From assembly GCA_002269645.1 (NCBI GenBank), contig NIVC01000795.1, positions 210,870 through 274,869 on the forward strand: DNA of 64,000 bases, read 5' to 3'. Below, in pieces: positions 35,328-59,282 of this stretch. The first letter of the stretch is position 1. Every line of letters starts with the position of its first letter. The notes under the pieces are model-generated. The model ran no database searches and was not told the origin of the DNA. It worked only from the letters and a program-made list of their open reading frames with translations. The translations under genes were made by a program, and so were the position numbers. Origin of the DNA: Macrostomum lignano (Eukaryota).

Positions 35328-38300
35328 ATGCTGAAGCTGGCCGCCAAGAGATCAGCTGACTCAGCCTCTCTGTCGGATGATGCGGCCGCTTTGCCCAGTG
35401 TCAAGTACTGCCTGTGGAAAAAGGTAACTTTGCTGGGAAGCCACCAAATGCTGCAGTTTTCTTGGAAACTGGACAGATTGAATAAGACTTTGCCTCTAAA
35501 TATTGCCAAATATTTATCCCGAGTCTTCGAGTGCTCAGTCTAAAGCGAGTGCTCAGTCTAAAGCGAGTGCTCAGTCTAAAGCGAGTGCTCAGTCTAAAGC
35601 GAGTGCTCAGTCTAAACTGAGTGCTCAGTCTAAAGCGAGTGCTCAGTCTAAACTGAGTGCTCAGTCTAAAGCGAGTGCTCAGTCTAAAGCGAGTGCTCAG
35701 TCTAAACTGAGTGCTCAGTCTAAAGCGAGTGCTCAGTCTAAAGCGAGTGCTCAGTCTAAACTGAGTGCTCAGTCTAAAGCGAGTGCTCAGTCTAAAGCGA
35801 GTGCTCAGTCTAACCTGAGTGCTCAGTTTAAAGCGAGTATATTTATTTGAACTCGGTGCTAAGTGCTCATTCTAAACAAGCGCCCAGTTTGGTCTCGGTG
35901 TTGCCAACAGTTCTAGAAAAAATGGCTGACTTTCAATTCCGACCTTCACAGCATGCCCGAAGCCAGGCATTCAGGAATTCAAGTAAAAGCTTTGGGCGAG
36001 CAGTCGAGCAAAGAAAAGAAGTTGTTTTCTCCGAAATGTGGCGCCTTGGCCAACTTCAAATGCGCAGTTTGAAAGCACTTAACATGGCATCACCCTGCAG
36101 GATTTATGCATTTCTTTTCTGGGGCGTCGGCCAAACGGTACAAATTTGGACTAAAATGGCACACAAGTTGGTTAATACACGGCCTGCTAAGTCACTTCTA
36201 CGTGACCTAAATGTAGTTCTGCATACCCGAGCACTAAGAGATGGACCGCCCCCCCCGACTCACCTGATGCTCACCTGAAAGACAGCGCGGTGGTCTCGCA
36301 GTGCCATTACAGAGCAATGCGGTATTGAAGGCAAACACACTTGCAGGTCTGTGTGACGGCGTCCCCATTATTTCCATAAATTTTGCTGGGAGAGAAAACA
36401 GAGCAAAAAAAAGAAGAGAACAAAAAAACCCACCGCCGCCGGCCTCGCCAATAAAGAAAAACTTTCTTTAGGCGCAATTCGCCTTAGAGATATAAATTGG
36501 TCGCTTACCCGATGAGGTAGGGCTGGCTGTTCTGAGCAGACAGAGCTGAGATTTCCTCCCGAAGTCAAATTTGAAATGAGACAGAGATGGTCCTGGTAAG
36601 GCTGGCTTATTGAGTCGGTTTCGTTGCTGCTTTTTTGCTGCAACTAATTTGGGCAATCATCGCATCCACACACAGGGAACTCAGTTCACTTACGACATAC
36701 CGGATGGTCTTATCGAGGGCGACTGCGTGGAGATTAAAGGAATTCTGTCGGGTCACAGGTGAGTCTCGGCCGAAGGTATTCCATATTCACGGACACGCAG
36801 ACTGTTGATCAGCTTAGCTAAACCATGCGATGCCCCTCCCAGACTGCTGATCAGCTTAGCTAAACCATGCGATGCCCCTCCCAGACTGCTGATCAGCTTA
36901 GCTAAACCATGCGATGCCCCTCCCAGACTGTTGATCAGCATAGCTAAACCATGCGATGCCCCTCCCAGAATGCTGATCAGCATAGCTAAACCATGCAATG
37001 CCCCTCCCAGACTGCTGATCAGCTTAGCTAAACTATGCGATGCCCCTCCCAGACTGCTGATCAGCTTAGCTTAACTATGCGATGCCCCTCCCAGACTGCT
37101 GATCAGCTTAGCTTAACCATGCGATGCTCGGCCCCTCCCCACAGAGTGGTGCTCGAGCTCGCCAGCAGGCAGCAGACCGGCGGCCGGGCGCAGATCCCTC
37201 TGCGGATCAGCATCAACCGGGGCGGACACTTTGAGCTCCTGTGTCAGCCGGAGCCCGGCGCCAGAGACCGATTCAAAACCGGCAAGAGTAAAGGCGAATT
37301 CCGCACCGGCTCCTCGTTCACCGTGCAAATTCTGGTGGAGAATGAGCGCTATGAGGTGCGTCTATAATGATACAAATGCTTATAGAATGGTAAAATTTGT
37401 ATTTCACAATTTTTACATAAAATAAAGTAACTTAGTACAAGTAGTACTTAAGTACAAGTAGTCATATTCCAAGCTAGTCTAGTCTAACAACAGTACAGTC
37501 TAGTCTAGTCTAGTCTAGTCTAACAATAGTCAAATCTAGTCTAGTCTAACAACAGTACAATCTAGTCTAGTCTAACAACAGTACAATCTAGTCTATTCTA
37601 GCAATAGTACAATCTAGTCTAGTCTAACAACAGTACAATCTAGTTTATTCTAGCAATAGTCAAATCTAGTCTAGTCTAACAACAGTACAATCTAGTCTAG
37701 TCTAACAACAGTACAATCTAGTCTATTCTAGCAATAGTACAATCTAGTCTAGTCTAACAACAGTACAATCTAGTCTATTCTAGCAATAGTACAATCTAGT
37801 CTAGTCTAACAACAGTACAATCTAGTCTAGTCTAGCAATAGTCAAATCTAGTCTAGTCTAACAACAGTACAATCTAGTCTAGTCTAACAACAGTACAATC
37901 TAGTCTAGTCTAGCAATAGTCAAATCTAGTCTAGTCTAACAACAGTACAATCTAGTCTATTCTAGCAATAGTACAATCTAGTCTAGTCTAACAACAGTAC
38001 AATCTAGTCTAGTCTAACAACAGTACAATCTAGTCTAGTCTAGCAATAGTCAAATCTAGTCTAGTCTGACAACAGTACAATCTAGTCTAGTCTAACAACA
38101 GTACAATCTAGTCTAGTCTAACAACAATACAATCTAGTCTAGTCTAACAAAAGTACAATCTAGTCTACTCTAACAACAGTACAATCTAGTCTAGTCTAGC
38201 AATAGTACAATAGATAAAAGACGCGTGTGCAAGAAAATTGCTCGGGGAACACTAAATTCGACAGGTCCGGCTAAACGATGAAGTCCTGTCAACAATCGAG

Positions 38301-59282: not shown

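Follow-up and report, generated by a model that had tools for sequence, protein, structure and literature searches.

A predicted giant gene of Macrostomum lignano that joins an AHNAK-type repeat array to five galectin-like domains

Results

The window analysed here is a stretch of 64,000 nucleotides from the flatworm Macrostomum lignano (assembly GCA_002269645.1, contig NIVC01000795.1, positions 210,870 to 274,869 of the forward strand), and all positions given below are those of the window unless another contig is named. Two long open reading frames (ORFs; 38600-45379 and 45397-52482) lie on its + strand. Behind them come ORFs that end at 54039 and 55716, and then a number of shorter ones. 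A preliminary description of this DNA had proposed that these ORFs are spliced, through 13 consecutive phase-consistent GT-AG introns, into one reading frame for a giant protein of at least 6,047 amino acids (aa) with AHNAK-like repeats and five galectin-like domains. When every junction was checked, 14 introns, all of them GT...AG and phase-consistent, were found to link 15 exons (35328-62178, +) into one frame. The splicing pattern therefore held, except that there is one intron more and the gene runs past 59282 to 62178. The junctions 38478/38637, 52468/52946, 54018/54604 and 55578/55972, which had been singled out for checking, are all GT...AG with consistent phase, and the read-through stops at 52482, 54039 and 55716 lie where they had been placed. 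The figure of 6,047 aa was reproduced exactly only after one base had been added, since the frame as assembled is interrupted at ~45,371, a break that the preliminary description had not mentioned. With this repair of 1 nt, the product of the 15-exon model is 6,056 aa long, with a mass of ~656 kDa and an isoelectric point (pI) of 4.7.

In the model of the preliminary description, exon 1 (35328-35423, +) encodes 32 aa from the ATG at 35328, and its frame is open back to an acceptor at 35286. Three exons separated by GT-AG introns (36676-36758, 37145-37355 and 38265-38478, +) hold the first galectin-like domain, G1, and an acidic linker (overall 36676-38478). They are followed by the giant exon (38637-52468, +), which extends over 13.8 kb and has 4,611 codons after repair, by an acidic exon (52946-54018, +; 358 aa, pI 4.05) and by a basic, Ser-rich exon with polyQ (54604-55578, +; 325 aa, pI 9.9). 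The intron 52468/52946, which joins the giant exon to the acidic one, has consensus sites (GTAAGT...TTGTAG) and keeps the phase. The remaining galectin-like domains are encoded by two groups of exons on the + strand: 55972-56060, 56219-56432, 56650-57048 and 57137-57253 hold G2 and G3, and 57699-58210, 58860-59064 and 59163-59282 hold G4 and G5. The last exon (62149-62178, +) encodes TALLFSTCN and the stop codon. It is separated from the preceding one by an intron of 2.9 kb containing a purine-rich repeat, and is present both in the UniProt entry A0A1I8GPB3 and at the locus of the paralogue PAA47915, which are described below. The Cys of this terminal exon is retained (...STCN at 62149-62175, ...SCCIN in PAA47915); that a Cys so near the C-terminus might be a lipidation site is speculative.

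A candidate first coding exon (MATNGDTVWLPTDYHERLK; 33850-33906, +) was located further upstream. Spliced to 35286, it would offer an alternative start, ATG 33850, upstream of the ATG at 35328. The UniProt entry A0A1I8GPI7 has its exact match at 33730-33906, continued at 35286-35423, with the donor GTGAGC and an acceptor ending in ...TTGAG. The gene may thus begin at ATG 33850 by way of exon 33850-33906. Taken as a whole, we consider it probable, though by no means certain, that the locus is one M. lignano gene, read from the + strand between ~33.85 and 62.18 kb, with 15-16 exons and a product of ~6,060-6,090 aa.

The AHNAK-type repeat array fills most of the giant exon (~38738-51934) and is divided by 65 HFKMPSFGL anchors into units of 75 aa (44 copies) and of 50 aa (20 copies). 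The units have ~97% identity to their consensus, carry DxDxDVK[G/A/K]P heptads and HFKMPSFGLKGPKVKGP as motifs, and are rich in D (23%), V (18%), K (17%) and P (12%). The differences between units are mainly synonymous, with ratios of nonsynonymous to synonymous differences (pN/pS) of 0.25 and 0.14. Moreover, the coding frame of the giant exon has 0 stops in 4,611 codons, against 460 and 313 stops in the other two frames, a difference that chance is far from explaining. These results indicate that the array is selected coding sequence and no satellite. Minus-strand ORFs of up to 930 aa also occur in the array, but they were set aside as by-products of the repeat, as they are irregularly broken and the pN/pS fits the + frame.

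As assembled, the array is divided between the ORFs 38600-45379 and 45397-52482, which lie in different frames and both translate to the same repeat. The cause of the frame change is one C missing at ~45,371, where GGTCGAAG stands in place of GGTCCGAAG. At the frameshift site (45365-45383, +) the sequence is AAGGGTCGAAGG, compared with AAGGGTCC[G/A]AA in the 63 other copies, and the repeat otherwise reads AAGGGTCCGAAGG; CC is thus present in 63 of the 64 copies of the motif across the array. A sister block with CC lies 1.2 kb upstream, and the two flanks of the lesion are identical to it at 296 of 300 and 300 of 300 positions. This single frameshift is most probably an error of the assembly, made at a CC run within a 1.2-kb block that was duplicated recently; failing that, the lesion would be very recent.

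Downstream of the array, the giant exon ends in a unique Ser-rich tail of 170 aa (from 51958, +). The acidic exon (52946-54018, +) contains ~22 copies of a 10-aa unit of the ELDVELSGEQ type, seen by Tandem Repeats Finder (TRF) as 23 copies with a 30-nt period, and its last 111 aa are contained in A0A1I8GPB3. In the exon 54604-55578, a basic cluster resembling a nuclear localisation signal (NLS), HKREQKKEEKKSKRR (54676-54720, +), is followed by a Q/K/E-rich stretch (~55000-55257, +). Neither the Ser-rich tail nor the acidic exon nor the basic/Q-rich exon gave a Pfam match. The Pfam scan of the N-terminal 215 aa revealed Gal-bind_lectin only and no PDZ domain, for which the possible 33 additional aa upstream are too short. 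From either candidate start there is no signal-peptide-like N-terminus with a hydrophobic h-region, and no membrane segment was found in the protein, the maximum Kyte-Doolittle value over a 19-mer being 1.21. Pfam and TRF thus bore out the order of parts given in the preliminary description (galectin-like domain, ~4,400 aa of repeats, acidic 10-aa repeats, polyQ, four galectin-like domains), as well as the absence of a PDZ domain and a signal peptide.

The galectin-like domains were assessed against the Pfam profile PF00337, whose cut-off is 22.1 bits. Three of the five reach it on their own. G1 (in 36676-38478, +) scores 39.8 bits over positions 1-132 of the 132 in the profile and aligns in the PDB with galectin-4 and galectin-3. 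G2 (55972-56760, +; exons 55972-56060 and 56219-56432 with the first part of 56650-57048) scores 53.9 bits, with the N-terminal carbohydrate-recognition domain (CRD) of the Toxascaris leonina galectin as its best PDB match (E 2e-14). G4 (57699-58106, +) scores 29.1 bits and aligns with galectin-7 in the PDB. The other two domains are divergent and score below the cut-off: G3 (56761-57253, +; the rest of exon 56650-57048 and 57137-57253) with 13.0 bits and G5 (58107-59282, +; the end of 57699-58210 with 58860-59064 and 59163-59282) with 18.3 bits. They are colinear with CRD2 and CRD4, respectively, of the four-CRD galectins discussed below. When G2-G5 was modelled with AlphaFold2 (AF2) from the single sequence, the predicted local distance difference test (pLDDT) was 32, and an alignment of 11 sequences, made up of paralogues and four-CRD galectins, was used instead. 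The resulting model consists of four all-β domains with a mean pLDDT of 79.9, including an all-β G3 (74-90) and G5 (63-85). In Foldseek, E values of 1e-14 to 1e-15 were obtained with the tandem galectins galectin-8, galectin-9 and that of Toxascaris leonina; single CRDs were matched as well, with galectin-7 reaching a template modelling (TM) score of 0.88-0.89 and a root-mean-square deviation of ~2 Å. The expected galectin fold was accordingly recovered both in the profile search (G1, G2 and G4) and in the structural comparison (G2-G5).

The residues that bind sugar in galectins are a different matter. G1 keeps 0 of the 7 canonical residues when aligned with galectin-3, having P, R, S, Q, D, K and G at the key positions, and G4 keeps 1 of 7, the Arg, when aligned with galectin-7. 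In G2, 4 of 7 are retained (R, W, E and R), and Q, T and C replace H, N and N. G3 and G5 are without the H-N-R...N...W-E-R signature, whereas the aligned mollusc and brachiopod CRDs retain HFNPR...N...W.EE in all four domains. Degenerate sugar-binding sites are also common to the M. lignano paralogues. Since the signature is largely gone, "galectin-like fold" is the correct term, and a classical β-galactoside lectin activity of the domains appears doubtful. Of the proposal that lectin-fold modules stand at both ends of the repeats, the fold is upheld by Pfam, AF2 and Foldseek, but the function implied by "lectin" is doubtful with most sugar-binding residues lost.

Judged by sequence identity, part of the gene is already in public data, as two unnamed M. 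lignano fragments. A0A1I8GPI7 (labelled "Galectin", 380 aa), a match of the N-terminal query, starts in the upstream exon, covers G1 and ends within the first AHNAK-like repeats. A0A1I8GPB3 (labelled "Galectin domain-containing protein", 825 aa), the sole match of the spliced C-terminal query, extends from inside the acidic repeats to the final exon. Both align to the window without any mismatch. Together they independently use the junctions 35423/36676, 36758/37145, 37355/38265, 38478/38637, 54018/54604 and 55578/55972, as well as every junction of the galectin module, and they include the last exon. Their model differs in that the polyQ part (54877-55392) is spliced out as an in-frame GT-AG intron. 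Presumably, the public models are two truncated fragments cut by the unassembled repeat.

Word-indexed homologue searches returned 1, 1 and 4 matches, and to find the paralogues HMMER had to be run exhaustively, with the four-domain module as query. This search yielded the M. lignano proteins A0A1I8J927 (1,166 aa; 34% identical) and PAA52624 (BOX15_Mlig013397g1, 1,122 aa; 58% identical to the G2-G5 module), and, in the same cluster as the latter, PAA47915 (BOX15_Mlig025793g1, 1,637 aa, partial), which comes from the transcriptome-guided Mlig_3_7 annotation. PAA47915 starts, cut by the contig end, in a G1-like domain 35% identical to G1 (E 1e-20), and its "...ELIVPKKF..." corresponds to "...DFILPKKV..." at the start of the giant exon. 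Next come ~900 aa rich in Q, K and S, and then a four-domain module 54% identical to G2-G5. On its contig (NIVC01004292.1) the introns are at the same positions, including the G1/linker junction and the one before the 9-aa terminal exon; a single intron (WKEK/RAPK) is missing there. As a separate observation, the gene adjoining PAA47915 on this contig (19373-27176, +) encodes a MACPF-domain protein.

We define a Macrostomum "1+4 galectin-like domain" family by a colinear arrangement of G1, linker and G2-G5, shared introns and the 9-aa exon, all of which were found in the giant gene. The conserved layout and introns of PAA47915 show that the "1+4" layout is a family trait, and this is the best support for a single gene. 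On the sequence comparison, the giant gene is a repeat-expanded member of this small family. PAA47915, PAA52624 and A0A1I8J927 resemble it in the "1+4" layout, the introns, the 9-aa terminal exon and the identity of G2-G5 (54-58%) and G1 (35%). They differ in their linkers, which are 500-900 aa long and Q/K/S-rich or acidic and disordered, none having an AHNAK-type array or acidic decapeptides. The search for the same fusion elsewhere, as proposed in the preliminary description, therefore recovered the "1+4" layout in M. lignano paralogues but not the AHNAK-type array in their linkers.

Outside Macrostomum, the closest counterparts of the C-terminal 550 aa are the four-CRD galectins of Patella, Lingula, Euprymna and Owenia (545-576 aa), which are colinear with it at 17-21% identity and have the same tandem β-sandwich fold; with the Patella protein, one phmmer stretch covers residues 14-554. 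These galectins stand alone and carry H.NPR...N...W.E.R in all four domains, whereas here the signature is degenerate and the module forms the tail of a 6,000-aa protein. The "1+4" family probably derives from four-CRD galectins of other lophotrochozoans. Galectin β-sandwiches with incomplete sugar-binding residues are known in GRIFIN, galectin-related protein and galectin-10/CLC, which are small proteins of one or two domains, and the pairing of galectin-8 with NDP52 is a case of a galectin domain used for protein contact. The structure of that pair (PDB 4han) was among the top structural matches of our model. Folds of the GRIFIN/CLC type are thus similar to those described here in their incomplete sugar site and in a use for protein contact, known or presumed, but differ in comprising only one or two domains.

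The statement that galectins are normally small has exceptions in predicted teleost proteins (from eels, catfishes and a sucker) of 2,000-3,800 aa with 12-21 matched galectin stretches, which are labelled "uncharacterized", "hypothetical" or, automatically, "Galectin". These tandem arrays, among them Anguilla LOC118208806 (3,214 aa), Conger KAJ8256622 (3,840 aa) and Ictalurus LOC108264746, share with the flatworm protein a very large size and many galectin domains. The Conger protein, which was the one examined in full, differs in that its largely canonical CRDs are arrayed back to back, with no AHNAK-type rod.

The repeats of AHNAK have the heptad consensus D/E-φ-x-φ-K-A/G-P and contain KMPxF motifs. 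A phmmer search with the Macrostomum repeat matched an unnamed shark fragment of AHNAK type (E 3e-17), and the alignment reached z = 14 over shuffles. The published epitope of the AHNAK repeat (KIS) is KISMPDVDLHLKGPK (PMC3230764), and Macrostomum PDVDIDVKGPK matches it at 8 of 11 residues; the repeat comparison covers this epitope and the unnamed shark fragment. The resemblance is real at the motif level; on these alignments, homology is unproven and convergence possible. A vertebrate source of the DNA, which the AHNAK-like look of the repeats would suggest, was rejected: the only exact matches are entries of M. lignano, as are all the paralogues. An apparent relative of the repeat in another species (ENA ERZ26867466) turned out to be a multi-C2-domain gene. 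In that contig (9811-16871, +), D/K/P repeats of the KPDLDIDV type alternate with ~10 C2 domains and end near a FYVE domain.

AHNAK has a giant exon, with a repeat region of 4,392 aa made of ~128-aa units, and its non-repeat N- and C-termini come from small exons (PMC10682155). AHNAK and AHNAK2 are similar to the flatworm gene in having ~4,400 aa of tandem units in a giant single exon (the 75- and 50-aa units here often pair to 125 aa), small exons for the non-repeat ends, the motifs PDVD...KGPK and FKMP.FG, polyampholytic repeats and no signal peptide. The sizes are also alike (~700 kDa, against ~660 kDa here). However, AHNAK has an N-terminal PDZ domain where the flatworm protein has a galectin-fold domain, and its C-terminus is a 1,002-aa tail with an S100A10/annexin A2 site, whereas the flatworm protein ends in four galectin-fold domains. 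In addition, AHNAK has longer and much less uniform units than the flatworm protein, in which they are 97% identical.

The larger introns of the giant gene are nearly all filled by tandem repeats. These are an 18-nt unit x17 (35528-35838), a 42-nt unit x8 (36798-37127), a 26-nt unit x28 (37470-38211), (GACA)44 (56441-56616), a 39-nt unit x6 (57339-57584) and a perfect (CTA)212 (58218-58853). The last intron carries a 1.4-kb purine-rich array of 20/41-nt units with a GC skew of 0.74 (59928-61394).

Several other features lie upstream of the gene. An apparently intact retroelement of the Ty3/gypsy type with long terminal repeats (421-6814, -) encodes a gag that has a zinc knuckle; its pol, of 1,483 aa, combines RVT_1, RNase H and integrase. 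After an AT-rich region (10-16 kb, GC 0.31-0.34), an RVT_1 fragment below the cut-off (16900-17703, -) is probably a decayed non-LTR element. A large ankyrin-repeat protein is encoded at 17922-21597 (+), its C-terminal third resembling a multi-pass membrane or channel domain (TRP-like by eye), and a truncated duplicate of the ends of this gene lies 4 kb downstream (25959-26390, +). An ORF with ~12 tandem copies of a 13-aa unit (AAGSAERQPSQQR; 27611-28453, +) has a shorter relative at 22602-22955, and a DDE_3 (Tc1/mariner-like) transposase ORF is found at 28858-29610 (-).

Discussion

On the reading that we prefer, the whole frame would be transcribed as a single full-length mRNA. Its product would work inside the cell, at the cortex or on the cytoskeleton, as a polyampholyte rod or tether comparable to vertebrate AHNAK. 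The β-sandwich modules at its ends would act as attachment or oligomerisation domains, replacing the PDZ domain and the C-terminal binding region of AHNAK. Because four of the five domains have lost β-galactoside-binding residues, their partners would more likely be proteins or non-canonical ligands than lactosamine glycans. In our analysis an intracellular AHNAK-like scaffold is the most likely role. The analysis shows how the gene is built, how its domains fold, that the sugar-binding motif is lost, that the repeats are under selection and that the paralogue conserves the plan; the single mRNA, the localisation and the scaffold function are inferred.

Several points weigh against this interpretation. 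The frame as assembled is broken at ~45,371; the junction 52468/52946 is predicted from splice logic and the architecture of the paralogue PAA47915; the similarity to AHNAK repeats could be convergence, with KPDLDIDV repeats occurring in an unrelated eukaryotic contig; and G2, with 4 of 7 sugar-binding residues, could bind glycans. Moreover, the start of PAA52624, a Met in a first exon of its own, lies within the linker, and the protein contains the four-domain module only. In M. lignano, trans-splicing affects 30% of the genes, 15% belong to operons, and the spliced leader ends in AUG (PMC8629364). At the phase-0 acceptor 54604 this AUG would be in frame, and with trans-splicing and the short form PAA52624 it makes shorter products plausible, next to the giant one or in its place, and separate products conceivable. 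If separate mRNAs are the main products, G1 and the repeats would form one mRNA ending at the stop 52482, and the linker with the four galectin-like domains another, made from an internal promoter or by a spliced leader at 52946/54604, and the fusion would be rare or absent. An AATAAA at 52770, ~290 nt past the stop 52482, is consistent with such an end, but it is at chance level (~0.7 expected in 477 AT-rich bases), and none follows 54039 or 55716. At the acidic exon there is no ATG near the 5' end, and the acceptor is in phase 1, which would put a leader AUG out of frame. The in-phase consensus sites of intron 52468/52946 and the annotation of PAA47915 as one product from G1 to G5 also argue for the fusion, and we regard separate mRNAs as unlikely.

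The break at ~45,371 could instead be a real 1-nt deletion, so that the gene is a pseudogene whose protein is truncated after ~2,450 aa and a near-identical duplicate carries the function. The frameshift does exist in the sequence, and so does a second copy, as seen in the near-identical UniProt pairs A0A1I8GPI7/A0A1I8I3S1 and A0A1I8GPB3/A0A1I8I464. However, the 2,361 codons after the shift and all ten later exons are free of any other lesion, the repeats are under purifying selection, and a CC run in a block 596/600 identical to its sister is a typical place for a long-read consensus error. This makes decay of the gene quite improbable. Equally improbable in our view is export without a signal peptide, by which the protein would be an extracellular multivalent cross-linker of surface or mucus glycans, serving in the epidermal coat, adhesion or immunity. 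Galectins lack signal peptides and yet act extracellularly, the four-CRD galectins of molluscs and brachiopods with which the C-terminal module is colinear keep HFNPR...W.EE, and G2 retains R, W, E and R. Yet the canonical residues amount to 0/7 in G1 and 1/7 in G4 and are missing from G3 and G5; with its basic NLS-like cluster and its polyQ, a polyampholyte of 660 kDa looks cytoplasmic or nuclear; and the AHNAK analogy points to the cell cortex. An intracellular scaffold therefore remains our preferred role.

Each component of the protein (AHNAK-type repeats, four-CRD galectins, galectin folds that are not lectins) is known separately. In the literature we found no paper describing an AHNAK-repeat plus galectin-like architecture and none relevantly linking Macrostomum with galectin or AHNAK, nor any mention of the paralogue gene IDs in searchable text, in agreement with the preliminary description, to which no account of the combination was known. 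The epidermis of Dugesia japonica expresses a transcript whose expressed sequence tag was labelled "similar to AHNAK-related protein" (PMC1896013); AHNAK-like transcripts have thus been noticed before in flatworms, without their architecture. A bolder reading is that the AHNAK-type giant-exon scaffold did not arise in vertebrates but is an old bilaterian module, and that the flatworm gene is a true homologue with galectin-fold attachments at its ends in place of a PDZ domain and the C-terminus of AHNAK. We think this unlikely, but if true, it would, together with the planarian epidermal transcript, mark a conserved epithelial cortical scaffold open to RNA interference and transgenesis in Macrostomum.

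In practical terms, the public annotation splits the gene into two unnamed fragments, and the long-read assembly holds a likely 1-nt error. For the family, the locus documents a lineage-specific "1+4" domain arrangement and offers a clear case in which galectin folds have lost the sugar site but are retained for structure or binding. Should the full-length protein be made, polyampholyte rods of the AHNAK style would exist outside vertebrates and be combinable with different end modules, and Macrostomum, being simple and genetically tractable, would allow the function of such rods to be studied.

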